A DNA stretch of 64,000 nucleotides from Takakia lepidozioides (taxonomy: Eukaryota > Plantae > Bryophyta), in contig CM060731.1 of the NCBI GenBank assembly GCA_030704615.1, forward strand, positions 40,300,001 through 40,364,000. Direction: 5' to 3'. The notes under the pieces are model-generated. The model was not told where the DNA came from. It saw only the letters and a list, made by a program, of their open reading frames with translations, and ran no database searches. Positions 3,823 to 54,460 of this stretch are shown piece after piece; the stretch's first letter is position 1, and every line of letters starts with the position of its first letter. A program made the position numbers and the translations under genes.

Positions 3823-3832
3823 TCGCCCCCCT
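3823..3832 (-). promoter_or_regulatory. Polypurine tract AGGGGGGCGA of element 1
   Basis: Purine tract, one T, then TG of segment A. Identical at 40535-40544. Confidence 0.8.
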
Positions 3833-4081: not shown

Positions 4082-7000
4082 CTATCCCAAGCAGTGTGGA
4101 CACAACCAATCTCCGTCAGGAACTTCTCAAGAGGTGGTGTCAAGCATCCCATATGCCAACCCCTTGAGCACCGATCACACACCAGCATGGTGGCTGCCCC
4201 TTTGGCAGACCCACAGAGCATGCACCTCAAACCTGCAGGTACCACTGCCAAGTTTGGGTCAACTCTGCCATCGACATTGGGAAGGTGACATGGCGCACAA
4301 TTACGCACATGGTCCTTTCCAAGTCATGCCATCCCGACCCTCTAAGATCAGGACCCCTGAGGGCAACACCTCTCGAACCCTCAGAATAACACGCCCTGCA
4401 GTAACATCCAGAGTCGTAGGAGCAGTCTGCTGCAAATAAACATAGTCACCAGGGCTAAACCTCCGAACCCCAGGACGATATCCTCCACCACGTATAGTGG
4501 CATACCTCAACGTATCACGGTGCTGTGCAATGGCAAGGTTCTCAAAAGCCATGGGCATGACTTTCTTGAACAACTCTGCACGCTGATCACATGCACGTAC
4601 CCACACGTCCGGATCGTCAAGGTTAAGGACTTGAGCAGTGTCCCTACGAATGGCTGCAGGCAAATCCGGCTCTCGGCCAAAGAGAAGGAAATATGGTGAG
4701 AAGGAGGCAAGTGATGCTTGTTTGCTGAACCTGTAGCCCATGGCTAACCAAGGAACCTGAAGATCCCAATCTCCTAGGTGTCCCTTCTGCAAGCCATACT
4801 TGCGCAAACCCCTCTTCACCGTCTGAACAACTCTCTCTGCTAAGCCATCGGCCTCAGGATGATCCCGAGAAGTGGTGCGGTGGTCTATCAAGGCTTTATC
4901 ACACAAAGCCTGAAACTCCCCCAAGAACTCTCTCCCTTGGTCCGTGAGTACCTCAGCTGGAGCACCAAATCGGCTAAGCACACGATCCAAGAATGCATAC
5001 GCAGCCCCTCACTAGCCTTGTCAGGCAATGGAACCAACTCAATCCACTTGGAGAAGTGCTCCACCATCACCAACACATATCTGTGGTGGCGCATAGTCAG
5101 TGGCAACGGTCCTGCGAAGTCAAGACTCCACCTGTAGCCCAATCCCATGATAGGTAAAGGATGCAACTGTGGTGTAGGGGCGTTGAATGAAGCACGCACC
5201 CTGTCACACACCATGCACCTAGCCACAAACTGTTGCACCTCTGTATGCATACCACGCCACCAATACTGCCCCTGCAGTAAACTGTGAGTGCGTCGCACTC
5301 CAAAATGCCCCAACTCCTCATGGGCATGCCGCACTAACCGTGCACGTTGTGTGGGGTGAGGCACAATCCTCACCCGACCACCCCCACACTCGAAGTAGGT
5401 GTATCCCCTCCCACTTGAACCTCTTGGCTCGTTGCAGGATCCGATCCCTCTCCCTGGCAGTCACAATGGCTGCCGTGTCTCCGTGCGGAGGTAGTCCAAC
5501 ACAGCCGAATCCTCATGTATATCTCTGGCACCACCTAGCTCATCACTAGCCTCAGGGTCCTCAGACACTCCGTCTACAGTCATCCCTGTTGTAGGTCCAA
5601 TCTGACCTCCCGATGCCAAGATACACAAAAATGCAGATGCGTGCCATCCCGGCACCATCTCCTCGTCCGTCTCACCATGCCACCGAGCTCCAGTGTCATC
5701 CTGCTGGCTCATGGATTGACTCAATCCATCCGCATCCCGATTGTCGATGCGAGTATAAGTGCTGCAAGCTTCCCCGTAAGCTTGTCTGACTCCATCAACC
5801 ACTTGAGTTGGTGATCCGTGACAGTGAAAAAATTATTAATAAATGCCCCCCTCTTAGCTAACAAATTCCAGCGCCTCTTTGTTCGAGCGGCTAGCGTAAG
5901 CCACTACGAACTCTCTTCCCTCATCATCCACCTGTGTGAGCACCGCTCCAAGCCCCAGCATGCTCCAATATGCAGCTGAAAGGGACGCCCCCTGATAGGT
6001 CGTCTCAAGATAGGCGCCGAGGTCAACCTCGCCTTGAGCTCTTGAAAAGCTCGTTCCTGCTCATCTTCCCACTGCCACTCCTGGTCCACCTTGGTCAGCT
6101 TGGTTAGAGCCTTTGCAATGGTACTAAATCCCTTGACAAACCGTCTATAATAGTTTGCCAACCCCATGAAAGCTCGAACTCGGCTCACATCCGTGGGGCG
6201 TGGAATTTGTGCAATGGCTCTACCTTAGTCTGCTGTACCCCCAATCCTCCAGGATATATCATGTGACCCAGATACTCAATCTGGTTGTGGAAAAACTTGC
6301 ACTTCCCGGATGCAACTTCAATCCGTGCGCTCTCAAGCGCTCCAATACCACCTGAAGGTGTCTCTCATGCCTCTCCATCGTAACACTAAAGATGATGATG
6401 TCATCTATGTATGTAGCACCGAGCAAAGTCCACCCCTGCTAGAATCCTATCCATGACTCTCTGAAACTCTGCAGGAGCATTCTTAAGCCCAAATGGTAAG
6501 AACGCCACTGATATAGGCAATCCTTGCCGTGCTCATTGATCCCCCAGAATGCCGTCTTCTGCTTGTCCGCCTCCTTGATTGGCAACTGGTGATATCCGGA
6601 TCGTAAATCCAAAGTGCTAAAGGCCTTAGCATGCCCGATGGCATCAAAGATCTCCTCTGGTGTTGGCATGGCATACTTATCGGACTTGGTCTGACGATTT
6701 ACAGGCCGGTAATCACCGCACATACGTCTCTCCGTCCAATTGCCATAGACATCCTTCTTGGCTGGCATCACTGTGGCTGAAGCATACTCTCCACCAGAGA
6801 GCTCCACCAAACCTGCCTCCCAGATCTTGAGTCCTCATCTGAATCAAAGACCTCTCCATGTCACTGTATCTATAGGGTCTCCGAAAGATTGGCGTGTCAG
6901 TGGCCAACTCAATACGGATCTCTTGACCCTTCAGTGCTCCCAAGTCCTTCAAACTGAAGGCAAAGCAATTCCTGTAAGCCCTCAGGAACCGCCGTATACG

Positions 7001-7111
7001 TCGTCTCTCTCCTCCGGTGACAATGGGTCCAATGTCAGGCTCCCAATTGTCCTCCGTAACTACAACCTTAAGTCCAGTGGGCTTAGAGGTAGAGGACGCG
7101 TCCCGTGGTTG
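4082..7111 (-). pseudogene. pol of element 1: RT, RNase H, integrase (HHCC and DDE) and C-terminal PHD finger; frameshifted, RNase H region garbled
   Basis: RMCGDYRPVN, FSTLDLRSGYHQ, HEELGHFG...CMVC, WSLDFAGP, TDQGREF, GLAER. PHD CMLC...CDRC..GWHMGC...WLCPHC, then TAG at 4082-4084. Confidence 0.92.
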
Positions 7112-10100
7112 CTATGCTGCAACCTCTTGAGCAGTACTCCCTACCTGCTCAGTCAATGACAAGGCCTCATCCTGCCCCATCATCTCATCCTTGAGGACCT
7201 CCTCAACCCGAGAAGAATCCCCAACCTCATCCATCACAGCCGCCTTGGCTGCCAACTCCCTCTGAACCTCGAGCACCTCCCACGTGTGCCATGGATGCAT
7301 GCACCCCGTGGTCCTCATATGCTCGCCCCCACTCACTGCCTGTACCGTCTCGGTAGGCAGAGAGACCATTGAGGGAAGTGTATTCCGCACTCTGCGTTGC
7401 TCAGCTAGAGCCAAGCTGATAATCCAGGTCAAGCAATTGAGATCCATTGCTTGCCCCAACACTTGACGACGTGATGCCTCAGAAAGAGACGACACCGCCG
7501 TGGTACCAGTGGTAAAACCCATTGCCCGCTCACGCTCGTCAGCATTAGGCTCCACTAACTGCTGCAACTGAGCATCCCACAGGAGGCCAGGTCCACTATC
7601 CCGGAAAGCATGCGATCCTGGGAAGCTGAGCAGTGTAGGTAATGCTGCTCGTGGTTGACCCACCTTGTTGACCACTGCCAAAGGCGAACGGTCATCGTGT
7701 CTCACACGTTGAGACTGCCTCCCTGTGTCCAGAATGTTATCCACTGTGAGATGTGCTGGCCGCTGCACCCATCAAATGCACGCTTGAGCAGTGCGGGTGG
7801 CATCATGTTAGTCCACCATAGCCGTGGACGATGAGCCCGTGACCCCACTGTAGCTGCATCTAGCAACACTGCTGACCCAAGCCACGACCGGACTTGATGC
7901 ACACTGGCCATCACCCTGGCCCGAGAATCGCCCATCAGTGGCACATTCTCCAAGATGTATGCTGAGATACAGCTTGATGAAGCTGCAAGTGGCGCAAAAC
8001 CCGCACCATCTCCCAAAACAGACCCGACCTCGAGTCTCGCAATCCATTGCCATGCCCGGCTGATGAATGCCCTTGGCAGGGCCAACCTGCCACTACCAGA
8101 TCAATGGAGCCAACCCGCTCCAAATCCTGCGCCCCCAGCAACGAAATGTCTGCTGGCAAGGCCTGCTGATATCCACGAATTGCAGACACCGACAACAACT
8201 CAGGGTACCGCTGCACCAACTGAGCAACATGGCGAAGTGAAACGCGTCGTGCAGTCTCATCCCTCTCCACATACAGGTAACGCCGAACTCGTACACCTGC
8301 CTGTAACACAGCAGCCAATCCGGTGCTGATCCCGCCAAACAAGTCCAGAAGACAAATGCCTTCATCCGGAGACTGCCACACAATAGGTGTGGTGTCCAAT
8401 GGAGACAATTGAGGTGGTCCTGGTGCAATCCCCACACTCTCCTCCTCTCCTGACGGTACAAAAGCCTCCACCCAGGCTTGTTGCACCCGTCGATCAGCAT
8501 CCCGCTGCAAATCCTTGCTCGTGCCCCACAATGGAGTCTGAGCAACCATGGTAGGCAACTCCGCCATACCATACATGTCATCCTGCTCTCCCGGAGGTGG
8601 TACATCCTCTGAATGAGCATTGCCCTCAAGCAACTCTCTAGGCCAACTCACTGCCGCTGTGAATGCTGCTAGTGTCGGCATCTTGCCTCGCTGGGCAACC
8701 GCAACTCCTCCTATGAACGTCACAGGGAGCTGCACACGCCGGCCCTCCCCTGACTGCCATGCAGGCCTATAGGAAGCTGACTCCTCCCAAAAATCCAGGG
8801 TGAAGCCCATGGGGTACAACACTGCCCCACCAACCAGGACATCGTATGAGACTGCGTCTGTCACAATGGCCTTGGCTCGCATCACTGAGCCATCTGTAGG
8901 GTGATCCGGCCGTAGTCTGATAGCCAACTCACGCCGTGTCATGCCCCGAGCCTGCTCCGATCCTCCCAGAGACGTCTGTATCTGGAAAGGACAAGGCTCC
9001 ATATCCGCCTCCGTGAGGCCCAAGCCTGCAATAGCAGCTCTGCCCAGCATCAATGGCTGAGCTCCCGAGTCCAACAAGACCCGCAGTGGCCGGTACCTCT
9101 TGCCTGCCGGTCCACTCAAACAGAAAATGCCATCCTGGTTGTCTAACATGACAACTCCAGGTGTCACCATGGCGCGCTCAATGGCTGGCCTAGCTGGCAG
9201 CTCCATCAACCTGGCAGCTGCAGCTTGCCATGGCGCCGCCGTGGCAGTCTTGACCCTCAAATCCGAGGATCCCTCCGGCACTACACCTCCCACTATCTCC
9301 GCAGAAGATGAAGTAACCTCCCCACTCTCACAGAGTGTAGCTGCCAGCCTGAACACCTCAGCTCTTACCCCGGCGTCGCAATCATGGTAGCCGAGAACAA
9401 TGGAGCCTGGCACACAGATGTGGCCGCTCCTAGCAGCACACTAGCTGCCGTAGCCTTGGCAACACTAGGTAGTGGTGCTACCCGTGTAGCTCTCCCCAAT
9501 GGCATAGTAACCTCCGCCTCGGTAATAGTCGGGCGAGAACTAGGTGCCATGGATGGCGTCGACACTGTCTCCGCCAATGTGAATGACTGAGGAAGCCTAG
9601 CCTGACGGCTTGCCTCCCCACGCTGTGGATCCAACTCCACCTCTGCACCTCGTGGCTCAGGAACTCGTGCTGCTCCTCGAGTCACGGCTGCAGCAGACTC
9701 CACCTGCACTAGTGGTAGTGCTGCTCCACACATGAATCCCATGCCTCCCATATCTCCTCCCTCAGGAGCAGGAGGTGGACCATCCGGCCTTAGAGCCGGT
9801 ACCACCTGAGCTGTAGCCATGGCAGCGAGCCTCTGCTCTAGCTGCTGAAGCCGGTTGGCCATGCCTTGGTCAACACCCTGACCTCCGCGTCCTTGGCCAC
9901 GTTGAGCTTGCCCTTGGCCTGCACCTCGTGGCTGGCCACCTCGTCCTCTCTGGGCTGCTCCACCTCGCCCCCGCCCCCGGCCACCATTGTTCCCTTGGGA
10001 ACTGGCCTGGGCGCAACTCAGGATGCAAACCATAACACTGGGCCTCTCCATGCCCGTGCTTGCCACAATGCCCACACTGCAACTGTGCAGGCTGTGCATG

Positions 10101-11275
10101 TGCCGGCCCTTTGCCTCCCTCTGGGCAATCCTTCTTGACATGGGGTCCTCCACATGTCCAGCACACCACATCCGCCCGTTGTTGGCCAGCAAATGAAGGG
10201 AGAGACCCCTGCATCTGAGGTCCTCTCTGCCCTTCCCTGAGCTTCACCTGAGCCCCCTTGTTGCCTTGAGCACGTTGAGGTAGTGGTTGGCTAGGAGCAC
10301 CACTACCCCGTGGTGTCTCCTTAGCAAATCCCACCATGACCACTCGTTCCTCCACCATGTTGAGCTCTATCCGCTCTGCCAGCAAAAACATTTGCTAAGG
10401 TGGGTTGGGCCGCTTGTAGGAGAGTTGCATCCCGCACCTTCTCCTCAGCTCCTTGTCCAATATCCCATACCAGAATTGGACTGCCTGAGCTTCCGTAACC
10501 CCTTGGGTTACATTTATCAAGCGCCTCATGCGAGTGAAAGCCTCCCTCAAGCTCTCGGTCGGCTTCCGTTGGAACTCTTGCAAGCTCCGCAACTTCTCTG
10601 TCCTCACCCCTTGGTAGTTCCCTCTCAACTCTTCGAAGAACTCCACAACAGGGTTGAAGGCAGGCGTGCTAGTGGGTGCGGTAGTGGCTTGGGTGGACGT
10701 CGTAGCTACTGTACCACCAGTCCCACTGCTGCTTGCTGAAGCTGCCGGTGCAGCGGCAGGTGTAGCCACTGCCCTCGTGGCTCTAGTGCCCCTAGTGATG
10801 GAGACATAGTCGGGTGACCAGTACATCCTCCACTCCTCGATCTCAACCTCATGCCCCCGCCTGAACTCATGGTAATCATCCATAGGCGGCCCCTCAAGGT
10901 GCTGAAACAGCCCTTTCCATGCCATGAACGGCGTAAATAGTTGTGGATTGCGCATTTGCTGCAAATCACACCAACTATCAAACTCTTGGATAAAATCATC
11001 CAACTCAATGGTGCCCACCGCCCCAGAGTACCTTCGTGGCCCTTGGTAGCTCCATACATCTCCTCCATTGTGTCCCACAACAATGGCAAAGAAACAACTT
11101 GCACCGCCGGTATGAGCCCTCCTGATTCACAATCCGAATCAGAACCTTCCGTGGAAGACACAGGAGGTGAAGGTGGCCTAAACCGCACACCTCGTCTCGT
11201 GTACCCACTAGTATCGCTAGTGCTCGAACCGGCACTGTCCCCAGCAACTAGTGGCACCTCCGTGTTGACACTCAA
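7112..11275 (-). pseudogene. gag (two Zn knuckles, RGG-rich), aspartic protease and C5 DNA methyltransferase of element 1; frameshifted
   Basis: CWTCGGPHVKKDC and CGHCGKHGHGEAQC knuckles; LLDSGA protease; MTase motifs DLFGG, YVE, GWPCQ, ENV, RPRLWWTN, ERERAMGF, LGQAM. Confidence 0.9.
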
Positions 11276-11499
11276 CCGGTCATGAACATGTCCCTAACCC
11301 CCTCTCCACAAGGTAACCGGGTAGAGAACCTGTTGCGGCTTATGGTTTGGAATACTAAGTTCCTAACATAGCCTACACCTGACTTGCATGACCATGGGAA
11401 TATCATGAAGATACTCCTCAAACCGCCCTCCACGAGCTTCAAAATTCGGCCTTCCAGACCACATGCCAGTCCTTAGTCCACCAGTGCCTCCACGAGTCA

Positions 11500-12420
11500 G
11501 CACATCCACAGGTCAACACGGGCCACCACAGACCAGCAGGCCCACACAGCTCACTGGTCACAGCCGTCACAGTCCCACAGGCCACTGGCCACAGCTGGGT
11601 CACAGCCTCAAAGGCCTCAGCCTGGCCCCTCACAGTCACAGCCTCACAATCATGTTCAAGGCCTCATCACAGTCAGGCCTGTCTCACAGCCCGTCACAGC
11701 CTTGTCACGCCCCTTCACAGCCCCAAAGTGGGCCCCACAGGGCAACAGCCCCTCACAGGGGACAGGCCCGGAACAGCTCACAACAACAGCCCCTCACAGG
11801 CCCAGACAGCCGCCCCAAAGGCCCACGCCTGTCACAGCCCTCACAGCCTTTCACAGTCACAGCGGCACTAGCCCTCACAGCCCTCACAGGCCCCAAAGGC
11901 CTCAGGCACGGCCTGTCACAGCGGTCAAGCCCCAAAGGCCTCAGGCACTGTCACAGCCCCTCACAGCCCCAAAGGCCTCAGGCACGCCCTGTCACACAGC
12001 CCCTCACAGCCCGTCACAGCCCCAAAGGCCATGGCACGGCCTGTCACAGCCCCTCACAGCCCGTCACAGCCTCAAAGGCCTCAGGCACGCCTGTCACAGC
12101 CCGCCCCAGTTGTCACAGCCCGCCTCACACAGCCTGTCACCACAGCCCCACAGCCCAAAGGCCACTGGGCACAGCCTGCCTGACACAGCCCGTCACAGCC
12201 CCACAGGGCACAGGGCACAGCCTGTCACAGCCCATCACAGGCCTCAAAGGGCCTGTCACAGGGGCCCCAAAGGCCACACAGCCTGTCACAGCCTTCACAG
12301 CCCTTCACAGCCTGGTCACAGCCCCACAGGGCACAGGGCACAGCCTGTCACTTTCACAGCAGCACAGCTCACAGCTCGCCACAGCCTCACAGGTCATGCC
12401 ACAGTCACAGCCCCAAGTAT
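11500..12420. repeat. Low-complexity tandem array of ~10-11-bp CCCGTCACAGC/CCCTCACAGC units in the leader of element 1
   Basis: Dozens of TCACAGC motifs; the array accounts for the S/Q/P/T-rich ORFs here. Confidence 0.9.
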
Positions 12421-12879
12421 TAGCCATTTCTCCAAGGGGTTTAGCCCGCCAAGCTAGGGTTTGTGTCTCTTGGACTCTAGGCTTCTTTCCACCGAGCTAT
12501 GGTGGCTGTGAGGAAATCAGCAAGGTATCCTTGCTCTTTCGGCTCCCACACACCACCATAGTAGCCCTAAGCCATGAGGTGGTTGCCACACAACCAAGCC
12601 TTCTTTCTCACTTAGCCTCCCCAAACACGCCACTAAACTCAATGGCAAACAACCAAGCCCTGCTGGTTCCCAGCCCTTGTGAGCACTCATTCAAGCACTC
12701 TCATTGGCCATAAGCATCTGTCTTAGAGCCTATTCCAGCCTTCTACACCTGTTGCTTCAAGAGTTGCGCTCCCTTCAAGCTTGAAGTTTGAACCCCAACT
12801 CACATAGGCCCTACAAGTGCTGTTCTTTTCACTCCAAGTGGAAAACCAGCCCTAGACCTTCCGTTCTAGCTCTCTAAGG

Positions 12880-13230
12880 CTTGAAAACAAGAGCCTCAAT
12901 GGCTGAAGGCATGCTCCACACATGCCCCACTCTCACCATAAGAGAATCAACTCCTTTGCTTCATTTCTTGCACCACACAAACCTGATAATACAAGCTTCA
13001 GCAGGCTGAAAGCATGCTCTACATGCCCTACAGGGAAACCAGCCCCTTCCTTCCTTTCTTGCACTCCCACACCTAAAAGTGCAAGCTTCACCAGGCTGAT
13101 AGCATGCTCCACACATACATTGCCCTCACATAAGGGAAGTCAGCCCTTCCCTCTTCCTTGCTTGCCCTCCAAGCTTGAAGATGGAAGCTTCAATGAGCTG
13201 AATACATGCTCCACACATGCAACCTCTTCA
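12880..13230. repeat. Four degenerate ~95-100-bp tandem repeats
   Basis: GCTGA..GCATGCTCCACACATGC-like motif recurring near 12901, 13003, 13094 and 13197. Confidence 0.65.
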
Positions 13231-13909
13231 CACAAGAGATATCAGCCCCCTATCTTGGCTCCTTGGCTCCTTGATGCTCTCTAAGACAAGACTAAGCACT
13301 CCATAGCTTTGCCAAGCTCTGAAACCCTAAGGCTTACATTTCCAGCCACAGACACTTCTCTTGTGGTGCAAGAGCTCTTCTTCCAAGCTCTGAAACCCTA
13401 GGTGCACATTCCATGGCCTTGCCGCACCTCTTAGCTCCTGTTCCAGCCCTGCTCTCGCCATGACAAGAGCCCTCTTGCTGAAGCTCGAGATTGAAACCCA
13501 TCTCACCATACTCCACAAAGTGCACTGATTTGCCCCAAGCCAATCAGCCCTTTCGCTTGGTCTTGCAATCCTTCCACAATGACAGCTCGCATTCCAAGTC
13601 CAGTTCTCAGCTTTGCCACCAAAGCCACTATAACCTGCTCTTGACTGGTCCTCTTCCCAATCGTGCTTGCTCATGCATGTACACAATCTGAAACCATCAA
13701 GGTGCTCTGGAATTACCTACAGTATGGTGCTTTCATCTCTGAAGCTGAAGATCGAATGCCAAGGTTTACCACCTCGTAACCCACATCGCCTCCGCTTCTA
13801 ACAACCAAGAGCTCCACGGTGCTCCTTGCATAACAACTTGGTTTCTCTCATTCTCAAGCAAAAACCACAAGTGCTACAACTAACTCGTATCTAGCACTCA
13901 TAGATACGA

Positions 13910-13925
13910 GCTCATCTTTCTCGAG
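13910..13925 (-). promoter_or_regulatory. Putative self-priming PBS of element 1 (CTCGAGAAAGATGAGC)
   Basis: Directly follows ...TTATCA, the end of LTR segment B. Bases 13910-13926 are the exact reverse complement of 14090-14106. Confidence 0.8.
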
Positions 13926-14252
13926 TGATAAAGAAGAAGAATACAAGCACAAGCTCATGCGAGCTCACAAAGCTGAAGCATAAACTCAGGCATATATAAC
14001 CTCATCACTCAAATACAAGTCAAGCCAAGTGCACCCCACGCCATGGGGAATCCACACTACGGCGCCATAGCTAGGCGCGGTGAGGCTCAACTCGAGAAAG
14101 ATGAGCCTCCCGCGCTTGCCGTGAAGATAACCACTCCAGGGCCTAAATTTGCCTTGACCCCTGGATTGACACTTGGGCCAATCCCAAATGTCAATATGTA
14201 AAAGCTAGCTATTTCCTAGCTAGTTTCACACTAGTGGTAAAATAACTTAACA
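13926..14252 (-). repeat. LTR segment B of element 1 (PBS-proximal half)
   Basis: Bounded TG...CA. Shares the TGATAA start, AGGCTCAACTCGAGAAAGATGAGCC, GTGAAGATAA and the TAACTT(A/G)ACA end with 51555-51908. Confidence 0.85.
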
Positions 14253-14256
14253 ACAA

Positions 14257-39869: not shown

Positions 39870-39999
39870 GTGGGCCAAATAGGTTATCTTCTATCTGCCA
39901 TGTGTTGTCTGATGAGGAATACCCAGCCCATGACGTGATAGTATGTTCACATGCAGTGGCCCAAAGGCATCAATGACATTTGGGTTTTAACCTCCTAGT
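39870..39999 (-). mobile_element. Continuation of the Dualen-like LINE: second half of a chromodomain
   Basis: Reverse strand reads ...YYHV-WAGYSSSDNTWQIEDNL, completing AYIIEAI from 51909-51930. Confidence 0.75.
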
Positions 40000-40087
40000 T
40001 GGTTCGTGCGCATACATATCGCTACACAACTACATCGCTGTCCAAACCACACCACACATATATGCACAATAAAGTAGTCTGCCACAA

Positions 40088-40533
40088 TGATAAGAAAACT
40101 AGAAAACACACTGCTTCACACAGAAACAACATAATCCACTCGCATCACTCATTGAAAACTGAAGTCGAGCCAGGGGCACCCCAAGCTATGGGGACTCCAC
40201 CCCACAACAACCTGTACCCCTACATAAGCACACTCAAACCTAAACACATGCAGGAGCTCGGTCGCGCAGGCTCAACTCGAGAAAGATGAGCCGCGCGACT
40301 GCCGCTCTCGTGAAGATAAGACGGACCAGGTGTCAAACTAAACTTGACACCTGATTTAACACTTGACCTAAATCCAAGTGTTAAATACAAATAACTAGTT
40401 TTATTCTATTCTAGCTGTTTTCACACTGTGCTTATTTAACTTGACAGCTGTCGTGCGCATACATATCGCTACACAACTACATCGCTGTCCAAACCACACC
40501 ACACATATATGCACAATAAAGTAGTCTGCCACA
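40088..40533 (-). repeat. Canonical complete LTR (A-GC-B, 446 bp) with internal palindrome GACAGCTGTC
   Basis: On the minus strand it starts TG one nt after the PPT (40535-40544) and ends TTATCA, as does the PBS-adjacent copy. Confidence 0.88.
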
Positions 40534-40793
40534 ATCGCCCCCCTAGCTGGTGGATAGGTCCCTCTACCTCCAGATAGCTACAAGATGTAATAGCCACAGC
40601 CGTACTAAGTCCTCTATCACTGTCCCTATTGTACTCAAACTCTATAGACCAAGAGGCCGGGTACAAGAGTAGCCCCATCGTTAGTCGCCGTCTTGCAATC
40701 TGTGAACTTGAGCCAGGACCTCGTGTGTTCAAGGTCTCCTAGTAGCTGGGCCTTGCGTTTCTTGTTAGCCTTCCATGGTTGTATCCACTCCCA

Positions 40794-43700
40794 CTATCCA
40801 ATGCAATGTGGACATAACCAATCCCCATCCGGAACCATCTCAAGAGGTGGAGTCAAGCATCCCATATGCCAACCTCTAGAGCATCGATCACACACCAGCA
40901 TGGTGGCTGCCCCTTAGCAGACCCACACAACATGCACCTCAAACCTGCAGATACCACTGCCAGGTTTGGGTCAATCCTGCCATCGAACATTCGGAAGGTG
41001 ACATGGCGCACAATTACGCACATGGTCCTTCCAAGTTATGCCATCCCGACCCTCCAAGACCAAGACGCCTGAGGGCAAGACCTCTCGAACCCTCAAAATA
41101 ACACGTCCTGCAGTCACATCCAGGGTCGTAGGAGCAGTCTGCTGCAGATAGACATAGTCACCAGGGTTGAATCTCCGAACCCCAGGACGATAGCCCCCAC
41201 CACGTATGGTAGCATACCTCAACGTATCACGGTGTTGTGCAATGGCAAGGTTCTCGAAAGCCATGGGCATGACTCTCTTGAACAACTCTGCACGCTGCTC
41301 ACATGCACGTGCCCACACGTCCGGATCGTCAAGGTTAAGAACTGTAGCAGCTTCTCTGCGAATGGATGTAGGCAAATCCGGCTCTCGGCCAAAGAGAAGA
41401 AAGTATGGTGAGAAGGAGGCAAGTGATGCTTGCTTGCTGAACCTGTAGCCCATGGCTAACCAGGGTAACTGAAGGTCCCAATCTCCTAGGTGTCCCTTCT
41501 GCAAGCCATACTTGCGCAAACCCCTCTTTACTGTCTGAACAACTCTCTCTGCCAAGCCATCGGCTTCAGGATGATCCCGAGAAGTGGTGCGGTGGTCTAT
41601 CAAGGCCTTGTCACACAAAGCCTGAAACTCCCCAAGAACTCTCTCCCTTGGTCCGTGAGTACCTCAGCTGGAGCACCGAATCGGCTAAGCACACAATCCA
41701 GGAATGCATACGCAGCTCCCTCACTAGCCTTATCAGGCAATGGAACCAATTCAATCCACTTGGAGAAGTGCTCCACCATCACCAACACGTACTTGTTGTG
41801 GCGCATGGTCAGTGGCAACGGCCCTGCGAAGTCAAGACTCCACCTGTAGCCCAATCCCATGATCGGAAGAGGGTGCAATTGTGGAGTAGGGGCGTTGAAT
41901 GAAGCACGCACCCTGTCACACACCATGCACCTAGCCACAAATTGTTGCACCTCTGTGTGCATACCACGCCACCAATACTGCCCCTGCAGTAGACTATGAG
42001 TGCGTCGCACCCCAAAATGCCCCAACTCCTCATGGGCATGCCGCACTAACCGTGCCCGCTGTGTTGGGTGAGGCACAATCCTCACTCGACCATCCTCCCA
42101 CACTCGGAGCAGGTGTGTCCCCTCCCACTGAACCTCTTGGCTCGTTGTAGGATCCGATCCCTCTCCTTGGCAGTCATAGTGGCTGCCGTGTCTCCACTGC
42201 GGAGGTAGTCCAACACAACTGAATCCTCATGTATATCTTTGGCGCCACCCTGCTCATTGCTGGCCTCAGGGTCCTCAGACACTTGATCTACAGTCATCCC
42301 TGTTGTAGGTCCAACCTGGCCTTCCGCTGCCAAGATACACAGAAATGCAGATGCATGCCATCCGGGCACCATCTCCTCGTCCGTCTCACCATGCCACCGA
42401 GCTCCAGTGTCATCCTGCTGGCTCGTGCATGGATTGCGACTCAACCCATCTGCATTTCGATTGACCAAACCCGGTCGATGCACCACCTGAAAGTCATACT
42501 CTTGAAGGATGAGTGCCCACCGTGCAAGCTTCCCCGTAAGCTTGTCTGACTCCATCAACCACTTGAGTGGTTGGTGATCCGTGACAAGGGTGAAGAGATT
42601 GCCGTATAGATAGCACCTGAAGTGTGCCACGGCCCACACTGCAGCTAAGCATTCTCCCTCATATGAGCTATACTTAGACTCTGCAGCATTGTTCGAGCGG
42701 CTAGCATAAGCCACTACGAACTCTCTTCCCTCATCATCCACCTGTGTGAGCACCGCTCCAAGCCCCAGCATGCTCCAATCTGTATGCAGCTGAAAAGGAC
42801 GCCCCCTGATAGGTCGTCTCAAGATGGGCGCCGAGGTCAACCTCGCCTTGAGCTCTTGAAAAGCTTGTTCTTGCTCATCTTCCCACTGCCACTCCTGGTC
42901 CACCTTGGTCAGCTTGGTTAGAGCCTTTGCAATGGCACTAAATCCCTTAACAAACCGTCTGTAATAGTTTGCTAACCCCATGAAAGCTCGAACTCGGCTC
43001 ACATCCGTGGGGCGTGGAACCTGTGCAATGGACTCTACCTTAGTCTGCTGTACCCCCAATCCTCCAGGATATATCATGTGACCCAGATACTCAATCTGGT
43101 TGTGGAAAAACTTGCACTTGCCCGGATGTAACTTCAATCCGTGCGTCCTCAAGCGCTCAAATACCCCCTGAAGGTGTCTCTCATGCTCCTCCACCGTAGC
43201 ACTAAAGATGATGATGTCATCTATGTAGCACCGAGCAAACTCCACCCCTGCTAGAATCCTGTCCATGACTCTTTGAAACTCAGCGGGAGCGTTTTTAAGC
43301 CCAAATGGTAAGAACCGCCACTGGTATAGGCAATCCTTCCCGTGCTCATTGATCCCCCAGAATGCCGTCTTTTGCTTATCCGCCTCCTTGATCGGCAACT
43401 GGTGATATCCGGATCGTAAATCCAACGTGCTAAAGACCTTGGAATGCCCAATGGCATCAAAGATCTCCTCTGGTGTTGGCATGGCATACCTATCGGACTT
43501 GGTCTGACGATTTACAGGCCGGTAATCACCGCACATACGTCTCTCCGTCCAATTGCCATAGACATCCTTCTTAGCTGGCATCACTGTGGCTGAAGCATAC
43601 TCTCCACCAGAGAGCTCCACCAAACCTGCCTCCCAGAGATCTTGAGTCCTCATCTGAATCAAAGACCTCTCCATGTCACTGTATCTATAGGGTCTCCGAA

Positions 43701-43926
43701 AGATTGGCGTGTCAGTGGCCAACTCAATACGGATCTCTTGACCCTTCAGTGCTCCCAAGTCCTTCAAACTGAAGGCAAAGCAATTCCTGTAAGCCCTCAG
43801 GAACCGCCGTATACGTCGTCTCTCTCCTCCGGTGACAATGGGTCCAATGTCAGGCTCCCAATTGTCCTCCGTAACTGCAACCTTAAGTCCAGTGGGCTTA
43901 GAGGTAGAGGACGCGTCCCGTGGTTG
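40794..43926 (-). CDS. pol of element 2: RT, RNase H, integrase and PHD finger (few frameshifts)
   Basis: 561-aa ORF with LPFGLKNAP, YIDD, HTDWS, YEGECLA, TDHQPL; integrase HHCC/DDE; PHD ending DWLCPHCIG*. Confidence 0.93.
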
Positions 43927-46900
43927 CTATGCTGCAACCTCTTGAGCAGTACTCCCTTCCTGCTCAGTCAATGACAAGGCCTCATCCTGCCCCATCATCT
44001 CATCATTGAGAACCTCCTCATCCCGAGAAGAATCCCCAACCTCATCCATCACAGCTGCCTTCGCTGCCAACTCCCTCTGAACCTCGAGCACCTCCCACGT
44101 GTGCCATGGATGTCTACACCTCGTGGTCCTCACCGGCTCGCCCCCACTCGCTGCCTGTACCGTCTCGGTAGGCAGAGAGACCGTCAAGGGAAGTGCACTC
44201 CGCACTCTACGTTGCTCAGCCATAGCCAAGCTGACAATCCAGGTCAAGCAATTGAGATCCATTGCTTGCCCCAACACCTGACGACGTGATGCCTCAGAAA
44301 GAGAAGGCACCGCCGTGGTCCCAGTGGAAAACCCCATAGCCCGCTCTCGCTCGTCGGCATTAGGCTCCACTAACTGCTGCAACTGAGCATCCCACAGGAG
44401 GCCAGGTCCACCATCCCGAAAAGCATGGGATCCTGGGAAGCTGAGCAGTGTAGGTAATGCTGCTCGTGGTTGACCCACCCTGTTGACCACTGCCAAAGGC
44501 GAACGGTCATCGTGTCTCACACGTTGAGACTGCCTTCCTGTGTCCAAAATGCCATCCACGGTGAGGTGTGCTGGCCGCTGCACCCCATCAAATGCACGCT
44601 TGAGCAGTGCGGGTGGCATCAAGTTAGTCCACCATAGTCGTGGACGATGAGCCCGTGACCCCACTGCAGCTGCATCCAGCAACACTGCTGACCCAAGCCA
44701 CGACCGGACTTGATGCACACTGGCCATCACCCTGGCCCGAGAATCACCCATCAGTGGTACATTCTCCAAGATGTATGCTGGAGATACAGCTTGATGAAGC
44801 TGCAAGCGCAAAATCCGCACCATCTCCCAAAACAGACCCGTCCTCGAGTCTCGCAATCCATTGCCATGCCCGGCTGATGAATGCCCTTGGCAGGGCCAAC
44901 CTGCCACTATCAGATCAATGGAGCCAACCTGCTCCAAATCTTGCGCCCCCAACAAGGAAATGTCTGCTGGCAAGGCTTGTTGGTATCCACGAACTGCAGA
45001 CACAGGCAACAAGTCAGGGTACTGCTGTACCAACTGAGCCACATGGCGCAGTGAGACGCGTCGTGCAGTCTCATCCCTCTCCACATACAGGTAACGCCTT
45101 ACCCGCACACCTGCCTGTAGCACAGCAGCCAATCCGGTGCTGATCCCGCCAAACAAGTCCAGAAGGCAAATGCCTTCATCCGGCCGCTGCCACACAAAGG
45201 TGTGGTGTCCAATGGCGACAACTGAGGTGGCCCTGGTGCAATCACCGCACTCTCCTCCTCTCCTGACGGTACAAAAGCTTCTACCCAAGCTTGTTGCACC
45301 CGTCCATCAGCAGCTTGCTGCAAATCCTTGCTCGTACCCCACAACGGAGTGTGAGCAACCATGGCAGGCAACTCCGCCGTACCATGCATGTCATCCTGCT
45401 CTGCTGGAGGTGGCACATCCTCTGCATGGGCATTGCCTTCCAGCAACTCTCCAGGCCAACTAACTGCAGCTGTGAAGGCGGCTAGTGTTGGCATCTTGCC
45501 CCGCTGGGCAGCTGCAATACCCCCAATGAATGTCACAGGAGCTGTGCACGGCGACCATCCCCTGACTGCCATCCAGGCCTGTAGGATGCTGACTCCTCCC
45601 AGAAATCCAGGGTGAAGCCCATGGGGTATAACACTGCCCCACCAACGAGGACATCGTAAGAGACCGCGTCTGTCACAATGGCCTTGGCTCGCATCACTGA
45701 GCCATCTACAGGATGATCCGGCTGCAGTCTAATAGCCAACTGATGCCGTGTCATGCCGCGAGCCTGCTCTGATCCTCCCAGAGATGTCTGTATCTGGAAA
45801 GGACAAGGCTCCATATCCGCCTCCATGAGGCCCAAACCTGCAATAGCAGCTCTGCCCAACATCAGTGGCTGAGCTCCTGAGTCCAACAAGACCCGCAGTG
45901 GCCGGTACTTCTTGCCTGCCGGTCCACTCAAAGTGAAAATGCCTCCCTGGTTGTCTAACAAGACAACTCCAGGTGTCACCATGGCGCGCTCAATGGCTGG
46001 CCTAGCTGGCAGCTCCGTCAACCTGGCAGCTGCAACTTGCCATGGCGCAGCCGTGGCAGTCTTGACCCTCAAATCCGAGGATCCCTCTGCCACTATACCT
46101 TCCACTAACTCCGCAGAAGATGAAGTGACCTCCCCACTCTCACAGAGTGTTGCTGCTAGTCTGAACACTGCAGCTGGTCTCACCCCCGGCGTCGCAATCA
46201 TGGTTGCCGAGAACAGTGGGGCTTGACACACAGAGGTGGCTGCCCCTAATAACACACCGGCTGCACTAGCCTTGGTAGCAGGTGTCAGTGCTGCACGTGT
46301 AGCTCTCCCCAATGGCATAGTAACCTCCGCCTCGGTAACAGTCGGGCGAGAACTAGGTGCCATGGATGGCGTTGACACTGTCTCCGCCAAGGTGAATGAC
46401 TGAGGCAGCCTCGCCTGACGGCTTGCCTCCCCACGTTGTGGATCCAACTCCACCTCTGCACCTCGTGGCTCAGGAACTCGTGCTGCTCCTCGAGTCACGG
46501 CTGCAGCAGACTCCACCTGCTCTAGTGGTAGTGCTGCTCCGCACATGAATCCCATGCCTCCCATATCTCCTCCCTCAGGAGCAGGAGGTGGACCATCCCG
46601 CCTGGGAGCCGGTACCGCCTGAGCTATAGCCATGGCAGCGAGCCTCTGCTCTAGCTGCTGAAGCCGATTGGCCATGCCTTGGTCAACACCCCGACCACCT
46701 CGTCCTCTTTGGGCTGGTCCACCTCGCCCCCGGCCACCATTGTTCCCTTGGAACTGGCCTGGGCGCAACTCAGGATGCAAGTCATAACACTGGGCATCTC
46801 CATGCCCATACTTGCCACAATGCCCACACTGCAACTGTGCAGGCTGTGCTTGTGCCGGCCTTCTGCCACTCTCTGGGCAATCTCTCTTGACATGGGTCCT

Positions 46901-48069
46901 CCACATGTCCAACATATCACCCCTGGTTGCTGTTGGCCTGCAAAAGATGCCACGGGCCTCTGCACCTGAGGTCCCCTGTAAGCTCCATGGAACTTGGGCT
47001 GGGCAACCTTGCCCCCCTGACCACGCTGTTGGGCAGTCCCTTGTGCCTGTGGGCTGACAGCTGTGCCCCGTGCAGGCATGTCCTTGCCAAATCCAATTGT
47101 AACAACTCGCTCCTCCACCATGTTGAGCTCAATCCGCTCAGCCAGCAGAAACACATCTGCTAATGTGGGTTGGGCTGCTTGTAACAGGGTTGCATCTCGC
47201 ACCCTTCTCTTGAGCTCCTTGTCCAGAATTCCATACCAAAACTGGATTGCCTGAGCTTCAGTAACCCCTTGGGTCACACTTATCAAGCGCCTCATACGAG
47301 TGTACGCCTCTCGCAGGCTCTCACTGGGTTTGCGCTGGAAGTCTTGCAAACTTCGCAGCTTCTCTGTCCGTACACCTTGGTAGTTCCTCCGCAACTCCTG
47401 GAAGAACTCCACCACCGGGTTGAATCTAGGCACATGTGTTGTAGTCGTGGCAGGAGGAGTAGTAGCACCTTTTGAACTGGTACCACCTGCAGAAGTACCA
47501 GCACTACTTGCTCCACTACTAGTGCTGGCAGTGGGAGCTATTGGTACTGATGCAGCTACTGGTCGCGTCGTGCCTCGAGTAATGGAGACGTAGTCAGGTG
47601 ACCAATACATCCTCCACTCCTCAATCTCTGCTTCATGTCCTCGCCTGAACTCGTGGTAATCGTCCATAGGCGGGCCTTCCAAATGCTGGAACAGTCCCTT
47701 CCACGCCATGAATGGGGTGAATAGCTGTGGATTGCGCATCTGCTGCAAATCACACCAGCTGTCGAACTCCTGGATAAAGTCATCCAACTCGATTGTGCCC
47801 ACAGCTCCAGAGTACCTACGAGGCCCCTTGGTAGCTCCATACATCTCCTCCATGTCGTCCCACAACAATGGCGAATGAAAGTGCACACCTGTTGATGAAG
47901 CCTCCGAGTCTGTGTCTGACTCTACAGTAATTGAGGGTGGCGGTGAAGGTGGTCTGAACCGAATACCTCGTCTTGTGAACCCACTCTCACTGTTACTGCC
48001 TGTAGCCGTACTCCCCTCAAAACCCTTGGGTAACTCCGTAATGACACTCACAATGTGCACCTCCTCCAC
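43927..48069 (-). CDS. gag, protease and C5 DNA methyltransferase of element 2; MTase domain (~44240-45170) uninterrupted
   Basis: Two Zn knuckles, LLDSGA, LDLFGG, YVERD, AGWPCQG, YILENV, HRPRLWWTN, ERERAMGF, RRQVLGQAMD; ends TAG-CAA-CCA. Confidence 0.92.
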
Positions 48070-50186: not shown

Positions 50187-50517
50187 ATCAGTGGGAGGGC
50201 ACCTAGATGAGATCATTCTGAGTTGACCAATGGCATGCTTTGGCTCCCTGAATAATGTTGAGAGCCGTGAAGGCAGGATGCTCTGATGCCCAGAGACTGG
50301 TATCCAAATGACATATGGCAACTGCGTGCATGATTGATCCATCTACAGCTGCCAACGACGCCTGCACCACCTTGGTTCCTGTGACATGATGGCAGTAGTA
50401 GAGAGCCGAAGGAAACATAACGTTGTGGCAAATGACAACATTCTCGCCCTCTACCACACTTCGCTTGGTAAAGTCAACAACCTTCACTGGTGCCTTGGTA
50501 ATGCCTACACGTCCCAC
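50187..50517 (-). pseudogene. Captured BURP-domain gene fragment (C-terminal half)
   Basis: Four CH dipeptides: ICHNVMFPSALYYCH...AVAICHLDTSLW...ACHW, then LI*VP where the conserved W is mutated to TAG. Confidence 0.88.
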
Positions 50518-50599
50518 TGATTTTGGTGAACAAAACTGACAAGGCCAACCGTTTTTGTTTTTTTTTTTTCAAGAAAGCTGATGGGTGCTTTCAGCAGGC

Positions 50600-51400
50600 A
50601 AGTGAGAGTGGATCGCTCAGGTGCGTGGCCCAGTTGTCCAAGGGACCCTTGCCTGTAGCAGCAGCTTGCACAGCAAAACCCAAAGCAGCAACCATGGCCA
50701 GCCTTGCATGCTTAATTTCGGCGAGTTTTAGAACCTCTTTCTTCTCGGGGTCAGCTGCCAGTCCGAGGGGATCGAAGTACTTGCCACCAGGATACAGACG
50801 CCTCTCTGGGTCTAACTCGGTATTCCTTTGGAACTCAATGTATCCTACCACAAGAGTCTCAATCCAGACAAGAGCAGAGATGCTGAACGACAACGAGAGA
50901 CCGAAGTAAGAGGGACCATCAGCAAGTTCCACCTTTACAGCATCTTGCCATGTCACGCCAGTGAACGTCTCGACAGACAACGCTCAACAATGGCAAGCAT
51001 TGCCCATTTACCGTGGATCAGTTCGCATTCCCTGAACCTTTGGAGGCCGAACACCTCACTGTACGGTCGGAAGGGAGTGGGGTTGATATCCTTCCTCTTA
51101 TCAAGACGGGTTCCGATCACGACTCCAGCAGGGTTCTTAGCCAAGTTCTGGTTCAGTGAATCCAGCTCGAACTGCAGATACTCTGGAGATTTTCCCAGGG
51201 ACAGTGGATCGAAACCGTAGTCACCAACCAAAGATCCATCCAGCCCAAGACGGGGCCTTTGCACCTGGGAACCACAGAGGCCTATCCGCCGACCCAGTCT
51301 TCTTAGACCCAAACAGCAGGTCCAGCCCACCTGCTTGTTGTAAAAAGCTTGGACCCGCTACATTCCCAGGAGGTTAGAACTGCTGCAGCGACGCTTTGAG
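50600..51400 (-). pseudogene. LHCB4: Captured chlorophyll a/b-binding CP29 copy without a visible intron
   Basis: [93 protein letters not shown]. Frameshifted; A-tract at 50552-50569. Confidence 0.93.
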
Positions 51401-51542: not shown

Positions 51543-51554
51543 ATCTTTCTCGAG
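51543..51554 (-). promoter_or_regulatory. Putative self-priming PBS of element 2
   Basis: Bases 51543-51555 are the reverse complement of 51742-51754 inside LTR segment B. Confidence 0.8.
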
Positions 51555-51908
51555 TGATAAGAAAACTAGAAAACACACTGCTCACACCAGAAACAACATG
51601 AATCCATCGCTATCACTCATTGAAACTGAAGTCGAGCCAGGGGCACCCCAAGCTATGGGGACTCCACCCCACAACAACCTGTACCCCTACATAAGCACAC
51701 TCAAACCTAAACACATGCAGGAGCTCGGTCGCGCAGGCTCAACTCGAGAAAGATGAGCCGCGCGACTGCCGCTCTCGTGAAGATAAGACGGACCAGGTGT
51801 CAAACTAAACTTGACACCTGATTTAACACTTGACCTAAATCCAAGTGTTAAATACAAATAACTAGTTCTATTCTAGCTGTTTTCACACTGTGCTTATTTA
51901 ACTTGACA
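51555..51908 (-). repeat. 5' LTR segment B of element 2
   Basis: Near-identical to 40088-40446. Confidence 0.95.
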
Positions 51909-54460
51909 ATGGCTTCAATGATATAAGCATTGTTATTATCGTCACTATGTGGTGAGGATGGGGGGGACAATGCGGTGATTAGTTGGGCGGGGGTGGGGGA
52001 GCCTTGCATACTAGGTGATGGAGTGAATGGCGTAAGCAAGTTGTGGTTAGGTTCGGGAGGGTGTGTGTTAGGTACTTGATATGGGGGATCGGGTTGTGTA
52101 TCTGTAGGAGTATTGGTGGTATATGCCGTTTTGAGTGTTTGATAGATGGAGGCAATAGGGGAAGATCGGTACTGGGGGAGCAGGTCTTGGGCCGTATGTG
52201 GATAGTAGAGGCAGGGGAGATCACATTGGAGAGTGCAGGCTGCTGAGGGATGACAAAAGAGGGTGCAAAGGTGGTGTAGGCATCGATTGGTTTTGGACGT
52301 GGCTCAGGAGAACTTAAGAGTGAATTCGCTTGGTTTTAAAAGTCTATGGCCGGTGGCGGTAGTAAGTTGGGTGAGGGTGGTGATGTGGCATTATTTGAAA
52401 TAGGTGAGGATGGGGGTCTTTTGTTTGGGATAAGAGACGTCAAATTGCGATAAAAAAAGGTTTGTGAGCCATGCGCGTTCTAAAGGTGACGAGGTGTTAG
52501 GATAGGCTGGCAGATCAGTTTGTATGCTAATTTTCATTTGGCGTAGGATGAGTATTGTGTGTGCAGTGGGGGAGTGTAGGCAGGCCTGTAGGTGCAGGGA
52601 TGATAATGAGTAGAGACCACTGTATTTTAATGCAAGGTGTTTGAGAAGTCCCTGATAAATGATACCTAGACGCCCAGGATCGTTGAGTGTTATTTTTAGT
52701 TGGGTGCCTAATGTACGAGCATATGAGATGATTAATGGGCTCGAACCAATTCCGTAGTGGTCAGTAGGGAGTTGCGTGAGGGCATTGGGAGTGCTAGTCG
52801 GTAGGCCACATACACGCTTTGTTAGCTGAATAATACTTTTATCAAGTTTTTTTTATGTCCGGTAGGGAGAAGGGTACGGCGTGGAATGAGTATTGAATTT
52901 GTGTTTGTAGTACGGATTGAATGATTGATAATTTTGGTTGAATGGCGATAGGGGATTTGAGCAGGGCAAGGCTTTTGGTAGCGAGTTTGGATGATATAGA
53001 TTCTTTTTGGATATGCTATGTGAGGGAGAGAATGAGTTGTATACCTAGGTAAGTATATGGCTCGTCTGGTCCTAGAAAGAGAAATGATGTGTCTTGGTAG
53101 TGTACATAGAGTTTGCAATGTGAGGCTATGGCAGTTTTGGTGAGCCGACTATGATGTGTTGCGGCTGTGATGGCGCACTTGTGCAGGCTGAGTTCCATGC
53201 CTAACCATAAATTGAATCTGAATAGTTTGTTAACTTGTCGGTTTATGTGTTGTGGTTTATGCCAGGATAGCTAGATCATCTGCATATGCTGCAGCGGAGA
53301 TGTCACTTGATGAGGTTTTGTATTGGTATCCGAGCTTGCCGCGAGCTAGCCATCTGAGAAGGGGTTCTAGGAAGATAATGAATAGGTAGGGAGCTTAAGG
53401 TATCACCTTGGATAGTTCCACGGAGGATGGGGATAGGCGGGGTGGAACCATAGTATGCACCAAAATATTCAATAGTACTGTTTGTGTAGATGTTTCCTAT
53501 TAGTTGGATGGCATCAGTGGGGTAACCAAGGTCAAGCATGATAGCAAGTAGTCTAGCATGATCTAGGGAGCCGAAGGCATTTTTAAAATCGATATATAAA
53601 AGATAAATATCTTGCTTTGTAAGTTTAGCATCTTCGAGTGCGGATAGAACATATTGTATTTGTCGTGTTGTGCTGCATGTAGCTCGGAATCCTTCTTGGG
53701 GGTCACTAAGAATTTGGTGTTGCTCGCCATAACTTGATAGCATTGTGGTGAGTCTTCCAACTTTGGAGAGAGCAGCTGTCCAGTGAGGAATATCATGGGG
53801 ATTGGTGGGTGGAGGCATAAGTGCTTGACATTTGTTAAGGTGTTTAGGTAGGTGATACGTGGATCCGAAGGCCAGTTGTTTCCCAGGTGGATGGGGGTAG
53901 TGGTAGGTATAATGGTGAGGGCACGCCTGATTGTGTGGTATGTGTTAAGATGTGATGTCCATATACGTTTTTGAGTATGGGTAAGGTAGCCACCATTTTG
54001 TTTTGAGCGTGTAGTTTGTGGGATTTCAGGGGGGGCAGAGCAGGTGGCAATGACACTGTTGGTCATTTCTTTCATTGAAGTTGTGAGTATGGTCTCGGCT
54101 TCGGTCCAGGCTTTGTCAGGGGATTGCGAGAGGTTTGCTTCGGAGAGTATGTCGGAGAGTTGTATCATAAGGTGTAAGGATGTTGGTTGGAAATGCTTTA
54201 GGAAGGTGACTATGTTATTGTGGGGAAGTGGGGTTAAGATTCTAGATTGTGGTGGTGAGACATGTATGGGTGGAATAGGTCTAAAGGAAATGAGAGATGA
54301 TGGGATGGTTACTGACACGGGGTCATGGTCTGAGTTGCATAGACTATTAATGTGTACATGACTGCTGAGGTATGTGGGGATGTCGTTTTGTGTCTTGAGG
54401 TAGAAACCGTCAAGAAGGCTTAAGGATGAGTAGTTGAGTCCACCTTGTCTGGAATAGTGG
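51909..54460 (-). mobile_element. Degenerate LINE (Dualen/RandI-like): end of APE, RT and start of a chromodomain
   Basis: SLLDGFYL...SDHDPV (APE); QEGFR, YIDFKNAFGSLDH, RGTIQGDTLS, AYADDL (RT). Clade assigned from recalled motif similarity only. Confidence 0.8.

Follow-up and report, generated by a model that had tools for sequence, protein, structure and literature searches.

The window considered here is a 64,000-nucleotide (nt) stretch of the genome of the bryophyte Takakia lepidozioides (contig CM060731.1 of assembly GCA_030704615.1, positions 40,300,001 to 40,364,000), and it harbors at 40003-51908, on its minus strand, a Gypsy-type retroelement, designated copy 1, whose long terminal repeats (LTRs) are permuted. 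In element sense, copy 1 reads 5' B-PBS-genes-PPT-A-GC-B-A, with about 11 kb of internal sequence between a site resembling a primer-binding site (PBS) and a polypurine tract (PPT); A and B are the two parts of the LTR. Both parts are repeated: the plus-strand segment 40004-40088 is identical to 40451-40535 (85 nt, 100%; A2 and A1, respectively), and the two copies of B (40088-40446 and 51555-51908) match at 97%. A 10-base palindrome, GACAGCTGTC, at 40443-40452 forms the exact boundary between A1 and the 3' B across a GC spacer (40447-40448). The outer 5' end of the element opens with TGTCAAG, the same as the start of B after the internal GC, and the outer 3' end, ...GCGCACGA, is 1 base shorter than the ...CGACA that precedes the internal GC. 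A preliminary description of this DNA had proposed a permuted A/B layout at this position, an LTR defined by the PPT and the PBS as A-GC-B, and outer ends that are the two halves of the palindrome inside the LTR, minus its GC. The repeat matches and the position of the palindrome bore out the layout, the termini of copy 1 bore out the nature of the outer ends, and the definition of the LTR held as well. At the junction of the 3' B with A2 (the B|A joint), the end of B, as set by the boundary between the 5' B and the PBS, abuts the first bases that follow the PPT in A1. The LTR ends are joined here as had been suggested, and the spacer T placed between them is one of two readings, the other being a joint with zero spacer, as one A is shared.

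The Pfam domains of copy 1 follow one another on the minus strand in the order of a weak gag, a C-5 DNA methylase, RVT_1, RNase H, Integrase_H2C2, and rve (Table 1). The methylase open reading frame (ORF), for which DNMT3A and DNMT3B were the closest solved structures, sits between the protease-like and reverse transcriptase ORFs. No domain match, and no Chromo domain, was found by Pfam in the region past the integrase core (40974-41618). Since its reading frames are broken, copy 1 is evidently dead. In element orientation, the leader carries the C-terminal portion of a BURP domain (50206-50517) and, spread over two neighboring frames (50594-50980 and 50956-51330; profile positions 5-161), sequence from a chlorophyll a/b-binding protein, a pattern that looks like the retro-capture of host mRNAs. 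Copy 1 is nested in another decayed retroelement on the minus strand (39868-39969 and 51911-54318). The interrupted chromodomain of a long interspersed nuclear element (LINE) that had been reported there corresponds to a weak Chromo match (E 0.0045) on the minus strand at 39868-39969, shortly downstream of the insertion site; the host element, which carries RVT_1 (53306-53818), may be a LINE or a chromovirus.

Table 1. Features of copy 1, from its 5' to its 3' side in element sense, and the sister copy in the window
Feature	Position	Strand	Remarks
Target-site duplication, element 5' side	51909..51912	-	ATGG on the plus strand; 3 of 4 bases match 39999-40002
5' B	51555..51908	-	TGTCAAG at the outer end, ...TTATCA at the PBS; holds the PBS-complementary segment
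PBS-like site, not of tRNA type	51543..51554	-	12 nt, exact complement of B position 155-166; 0 of 2000 shuffles
Leader with host-gene pieces (chlorophyll a/b-binding, BURP)	50206..51330	-	missing from copy 2
gag-like ORF	46654..48069	-	Retrotrans_gag, E 0.0012, below the cut-off
ORF with weak aspartic-protease signal	45536..46915	-	E 0.02-0.03
Dnmt3-type cytosine-5 DNA methyltransferase ORF	43930..45288	-	PF00145, E 7e-13; in the polyprotein region
Reverse transcriptase and RNase H ORF	42085..43767	-	Pfam (RVT_1, RT_RNaseH)
Integrase, H2C2 zinc domain and DDE core (rve)	41603..42103	-	Pfam; frame broken after it
PPT, AGCTAGGGGGGCG (element sense)	40536..40548	-	kept in relatives
A1, first LTR part (U3 start)	40449..40535	-	ends ...CGACA; 85-nt identity to A2
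Palindrome GACA-GC-TGTC	40443..40452	.	halves are the outer ends of the element; GC missing at the outer ends
3' B	40089..40446	-	match to 5' B
A2, terminal second A	40003..40088	-	joined straight to the U5 end of the 3' B; 1 base of the terminal CA missing
Target-site duplication, second copy, degraded	39999..40002	-	TTGG on the plus strand
Sister copy (copy 2)	3636..14253	-	layout B'-PBS-genes-PPT-A'; B' 13925-14253, A' 3636-3823

A sister copy (copy 2) lies in the same window. Its segment 3818-11209 is 88% identical to 40530-47985 of copy 1 over about 7.5 kb of internal sequence. The sister copy begins with TGTTAAG at 14253 and ends with ...CGACA at 3636, has no second B or A, and is flanked by a perfect duplication of ACAA (3632-3635 and 14254-14257). 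The flanks on both sides belong to a plus-strand LINE (2600-3635 and 14258-15623; RVT_1 at 14281-15291), the ORF of which is open for 113 codons before the insertion and for 344 codons after it, and continues in the same frame once the insert and one duplication are removed. With the palindrome halves as its ends, the sister copy represents a clean insertion of the DDE type. Its A' is about 100 nt longer than the A of copy 1, owing to a run of short CACTAGT-like repeats (3700-3815), and its 5' region carries a plus-strand ORF (11463-12710, 416 amino acids) with no Pfam match.

Relatives were picked only by the similarity of their methylase ORF, and the surrounding DNA was then inspected. Related methylase ORFs were found in Calypogeia fissa, the nearest at 70% identity, in Marchantia, Riccia, and several Sphagnum species, and in many metagenomes. 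Four elements were complete, showed the B...A-xx-B-A layout (xx, the 2-nt spacer) with ends TGTCA...CGACA, and were flanked by perfect 4-base-pair (bp) duplications: L001 from C. fissa (AGGT), L029 from Calypogeia (AATG; internal spacer mutated to AC), L008 from Sphagnum troendelagicum (ATTC), and L005 from a JGI metagenome contig (CTTT), whose methylase is just 41% identical. One extra B-A unit is present in L001, which reads A-GC-B-A-GC-B-A at 15454-16429 with the AGGT duplication still perfect. The 3' side reads PPT-A-GC-B-A in L003, an ENA metagenome contig cut on its 5' side, and in L030 from Riccia sorocarpa, where no 5' B lay within reach; A-GC-B-A was likewise found on two metagenome contigs with different flanks (L133 and L137). 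In L007, which has intact ORFs, the 3' end reads PPT-A-CGACA followed by an AT-rich flank, and the 5' end could not be placed. L133 and L137 came from a scan of metagenome contigs with a 16-nt palindrome motif, in which family members made up 2 of 120 among the matches listed, the rest being mostly chance matches; such a scan samples both permutations equally, because each keeps one intact palindrome. Elements too decayed for their termini to be read were left out (L002 and L031 from Sphagnum, L004 from Marchantia), and in two further decayed loci that recur in many samples no repeats, palindrome, or credible termini were found.

These data agree with the termini that had been predicted, TGT(C/T)A... 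and ...GACA with 4-bp duplications, in the sister copy, L001, L005, L008, and L029, and with the predicted 3' ends in L003, L007, L030, L133, and L137. Had the preliminary description been wrong, most copies should have carried an ordinary A-GC-B at both ends; no such element was found among the window copies and relatives examined. Chance is excluded by the recurrence of this anatomy, perfect 4-bp duplications included, in genomes independent of one another, and we conclude that B...A-GC-B-A is the normal integrated form of the clade. The family is hugely abundant in the source organism, where thousands of short contigs pile up on 39986-41100 (runs X1, X3, and X5). Within this region, the summed contig depth of the bin 40094-40147 was about 50-fold below that of its neighbors. 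The family was also present in a separate "plant metagenome" run, and in a second organism (X6) a 5-kb contig matched the internal part of copy 1 from 40529 on, with a different LTR.

The enzymatic equipment of the family was that of a Ty3/Gypsy element. The domain order is reverse transcriptase, RNase H, and integrase (rve), a PPT precedes the 3' LTR, the place of the PBS after the 5' LTR is taken by a self-complementary site, and the termini are of the TG...CA type (TGT...ACA) with a duplication within the expected 4-6 bp (3 of 4 bases in copy 1). Two complete terminal repeats with insertion at the LTR ends, as in an ordinary Ty3/Gypsy element, were found neither in copy 1 nor in its relatives. 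The rve integrase is intact in relatives with open frames, in which the domain after it is a PHD finger instead of a chromodomain (L003, 5696-7015; L005, 16739-17431; L007, 11291-14335). No match to a tyrosine recombinase (PF00589) was obtained in the ORFs of copy 1 tested, including the 3.5 kb from gag to the 5' B, in the plus-strand ORF 11463-12710 of copy 2, in the scanned ORFs of L005 and L007, or among the Pfam domains precomputed for the genes called in L003, L005, and L007. Copy 1 belongs, in our reading, to a green-lineage group of Ty3/Gypsy elements with a Dnmt3-type methyltransferase and a DDE integrase.

The palindrome, ...ACGACA-GC-TGTCA..., is kept from the window to the most distant relative (L001, L003, L005, L008, L030, L133, and L137). 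Its spacer is GC in seven elements of different taxa and AC in one (L029), and a spacer this constant must have been inherited rather than copied from flanking DNA; an origin from the flanks, as in IS3 elements, was rejected for this reason. The PPT is kept in the window and most relatives, the tract of L005 being different. The LTR ends defined by the PPT and PBS are not TG...CA throughout: U5 ends with ...GTTT in L001 and ...CTT in L029, and B ends with ...GTTTT at the B|A joint of L003. Since these ends vary while the palindrome is kept, its halves are the only integrase-type ends shared by the whole family. The B|A joint was exact in all five elements in which both of its boundaries could be defined independently. 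A is always the shorter part (85-188 nt, versus 314-358 nt for B). A second PPT and PBS that would make B-A the true LTR was also considered and rejected, as the end of A is not purine-rich and no PBS follows A.

We next turned to the PBS-like site. The bases after the 5' B are the exact complement, over 11-15 nt, of bases at position 144-164 of B in both window copies, L001, L029, and L005, and for these exact matches 0 of 2000 shuffles reached such agreement; the match in L008, in the same part of B, was 13 of 14. Complementarity to mid-B was therefore present in 6/6 elements, and it was maintained by five different sequences, including a compensatory pair between two Calypogeia elements. 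The complementary segment of B lies in or beside a hairpin. This pattern indicates tRNA-independent self-priming of the Tf1/Sushi kind, which is known for those elements and predicted for the plant element Tcn1, with a PBS complementary to RNA derived from the element's own LTR (PMC6317226). The family of copy 1 shares this complementarity with Tf1/Sushi and Tcn1, whereas the latter have ordinary LTRs and a chromodomain, and the former has permuted LTRs, a PHD finger in the relatives, and a complementary segment at a mid-LTR hairpin. Self-priming of this kind would place the beginning of the transcribed, primer-giving region near mid-B, so that the 5' B alone would keep about 150 nt of upstream sequence together with R-U5, and a permuted copy could for that reason still be a functional parent. 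In copy 1, the 5' B probably holds the promoter, R, and U5.

An LTR retrotransposon of ordinary layout was also recovered in the window, 5 kb from copy 1, on the plus strand at 28288-35202. Its LTRs of about 705-730 nt are 94% alike, its ends are TGTCG...CGACA, its PBS is of the tRNA-iMet type (TGGTATCAGAGC), and it is flanked by a 5-bp duplication (AACAG). The recovery of this element demonstrated that the assembly and our method do yield ordinary layouts. The pentamers at its two ends are similar to the palindrome halves seen in the permuted elements. Elsewhere in the window, diverged repeat arrays form two blocks 12 kb apart, at 23183-24756 (start-to-start spacing of about 155-166 nt) and 35910-38456 (about 300-314 nt).

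The integrated products show that insertion was of the DDE type and used the palindrome halves, that the GC is missing from the outer ends, and that the U5-U3 joint is exact. A linear complementary DNA (cDNA) cut at both palindromes could yield B...A, and never a terminal B-A. We consider it fairly probable that the family integrates through cDNA with joined U5-U3 ends, that the integrase cuts the palindrome inside the LTR, and that the permuted form is its normal form. In this scheme, reverse transcription would give an ordinary LTR-genes-LTR cDNA, the U5 and U3 ends of which would then be joined, whether through a ligation that closes a 2-LTR circle or through a polymerase running on across the ends. 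The integrase would expose CA-3'OH on both strands of the palindrome nearest to the joint, that of the PBS-proximal LTR, leaving GC as 5' overhangs that would be lost at repair, and would insert the resulting permuted linear molecule with a 4-bp target duplication. Such a copy could replicate again, because its 5' B would supply the region upstream of the primer-complementary segment together with R-U5, and its 3' A-GC-B would supply U3-R. The intermediate may be a closed 2-LTR circle, and the integrase itself may be what cuts it. The B...A form of the sister copy and the extra B-A unit of L001 are probably reciprocal products of an unequal exchange of A with A, and the B...A form alone would also result from a one-LTR circle or from cutting at both palindromes. 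It is a more tentative extension, to which we give somewhat less than even credence, that obligatory integration via joined U5-U3 cDNA, with an inherited U3 palindrome taking the place of the cDNA ends, holds for the whole DDE-integrase clade, its members in green algae, liverworts, and mosses included.

Several observations weigh against integration through joined ends in this simple form. Every step after reverse transcription would have to be read back from the integrated products. Only one permutation was observed, in 9 to 0 informative insertions, and B-A-GC-B-PBS...A was never seen; if both permutations were equally likely, the chance of this outcome would be about 1 in 500. A symmetric 2-LTR circle cut at random predicts the two equally, and the rule that the nearest palindrome is used is ad hoc. 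The palindrome used is always the one closest to the U5-U3 joint, A being shorter than B. Such a preference might reflect an integrase that remains close to where the ends had been, or it could mean that the polymerase crosses the ends up to the palindrome and leaves a ready 3'OH at CGACA. Five exact joints out of five are cleaner than expected of end-joining. The duplication around copy 1 is imperfect, with TTGG on the plus strand at 39999-40002 and ATGG at 51909-51912, in keeping with the degraded ATGG duplication that had been noted (3 of 4 bases), and the terminal CA of A2 also lacks 1 base. Furthermore, the B copies of copy 1 differ at eight places, and seven of these are confined to the last 70 nt (U5; 40089-40155 versus 51555-51622), whereas 253 nt in the remainder of B, and all 85 nt of A, are identical between copies; this clustering is not predicted by textbook reverse transcription. 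The mechanism proposed earlier is plausible, and it needs to be amended for the one-sided permutation.

That one-sidedness is accounted for if no closed circle exists and the permuted molecule is made directly by reverse transcriptase, with the integrase acting on the ends, or near the ends, of a linear or nicked molecule. The plus strand might run on from one end of the minus template onto the opposite end and recopy A up to the palindrome, or a DIRS-like scheme with read-through RNA might be used. Direct synthesis would also explain the exactness of all five B|A joints, the U5-specific differences of copy 1 would fit a separate inheritance of the 3' U5, and tyrosine-recombinase elements of like layout are generally known to be permuted in the same single direction. 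On the other hand, we found no complete scheme with the supported PBS and PPT that gives a terminal A without an untemplated jump, and in most elements A1 and A2 are as alike as the two B copies, which fits an origin of both in the same cycle. By either route, we regard direct synthesis as rather unlikely, though a serious competitor to a joined-end intermediate.

The remaining explanations were judged very improbable. An ordinary Gypsy copy could have changed its layout once inserted, through a nested insertion, an unequal exchange, or the formation of tandems; the imperfect duplication of copy 1, its missing terminal base, and the occurrence of unequal exchange in the family (the extra unit of L001, the B...A sister copy) might speak for this. 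However, four independent complete elements and the sister copy end at palindrome halves with perfect 4-bp duplications, and no ordinary copy was found among the elements examined. Slighter still is the chance that the A-B-A block is a repeat collapse or mis-join, since the layout is clade-wide, which makes either misassembly or a local accident at copy 1 very unlikely. The family is extremely repetitive, and the short-read contigs of about 90-100 nt are too short to bridge the block, a point that counts against joined-end integration as well; but Calypogeia, Sphagnum, and Riccia, each assembled separately, and several metagenome contigs show the identical architecture, and the canonical LTR element 5 kb away was assembled normally. 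Equally slight is the prospect that a tyrosine recombinase, or some other enzyme supplied in trans, carries out the integration in the manner of DIRS, PAT, and Ngaro. The repeat layout is indeed of the split-direct-repeat type (PMC5890265, Fig. 4c legend; PMC8969392), but perfect 4-bp duplications and TG...CA-type ends mark DDE integration, whereas DIRS elements have no target duplications (PMC8969392), no recombinase domain was found in any ORF tested, and the rve integrase of the relatives is intact.

An element type with similar features has been mentioned before. KnitGypsy-Dnmt3 of Klebsormidium nitens (de Mendoza et al. 2018) has Gypsy domains with a DIRS-like repeat structure, A-coding-B-A-B (PMC5890265, Fig. 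4c legend), and, by domain content and description, resembles copy 1 in its Gypsy domains, its Dnmt3-type methyltransferase in the polyprotein region, and its DIRS-like repeats. That account does not describe termini, a palindrome, a duplication, priming, or a mechanism, and the host of copy 1 is a bryophyte. Gypsy-7a_cRei of Chlamydomonas reinhardtii (Craig et al. 2022), which is active in laboratory strains, is described with "LTR subparts", the last 8 bp of its right LTR being absent from the left one (PMC9940879). By this description it resembles the copy 1 clade in the PHD finger, seen in the relatives of copy 1, and in the same LTR asymmetry with a very short A; it differs in that no DNMT appears in the domain list of Fig. 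6A and in the length of the displaced segment, 8 bp against 85-188 nt. The novelty suggested earlier, that this mechanism was not known to be described for Ty3/Gypsy, was overstated in view of these mentions of the layout. In the literature on split direct repeats combined with an integrase, we found nothing beyond these two mentions, and no further treatment of the KnitGypsy-Dnmt3 repeat layout. Copy 1 is a new bryophyte representative of an element type that had been noted and left unexplained.

Among the split-direct-repeat elements of the DIRS order (PAT, Ngaro, and TOC1), the arrangement is A1-internal-B1-A2-B2, in which the internal B1-A2 represents joined termini (PMC8969392). The family of copy 1 has split direct repeats and shares the single permutation with these elements, whereas they use a tyrosine recombinase without target duplication and it uses a DDE integrase with 4-bp duplications. 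In copy-out-paste-in transposition of the IS3 family, a circle forms in which only a short spacer separates the two ends, and a DDE enzyme then opens it. The IS3 spacer comes from flanking DNA and is variable, whereas that of the copy 1 family is GC (AC in L029) and is inherited through RNA. An older circle-junction model of retroviral integration is said to go back to Panganiban and Temin, and the circle junction has been treated as an integrase substrate in in vitro work on foamy virus and HIV-1. A further study reportedly has integrase cleave the palindromic junction (PMC1905944). Cleavage of palindromic LTR-LTR junctions by retroviral integrase has been described (PMC1180852), and the preliminary statement that LTR circles are dead ends for DDE integrases was therefore overdrawn. 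By analogy, copy 1 would resemble the retroviral circle junction in having a palindrome of two CA ends a few bases apart that is cut internally by a DDE integrase. In retroviruses, however, the joint formed by ligation is itself the palindrome, and the route serves as a side path at most, whereas in the copy 1 family it is inherited in U3, 85-188 nt from the joint, and its use appears to be obligatory.

In textbook integration, the two ends of a linear cDNA are used, and circles with joined ends are regarded as by-products. A large, old, and very successful clade bears a footprint, consisting of the permuted layout, the exact joint, and the duplications at palindrome halves, that is incompatible with linear ends. 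If integration through joined ends is correct, the family would be a natural realization of the abandoned circle-junction model of retroviral integration, and its strict one-sidedness would speak for a joint made by the polymerase or held by protein, and against a free circle closed by ligation. Programs that search for LTRs as a pair of identical terminal repeats will annotate such elements wrongly in bryophyte and algal genomes. Solving the mechanism would reveal a second way to feed a DDE integrase and would link LTR elements to DIRS-type elements and to the circle junctions of insertion sequences, and the active Chlamydomonas relative makes the question open to experiment.

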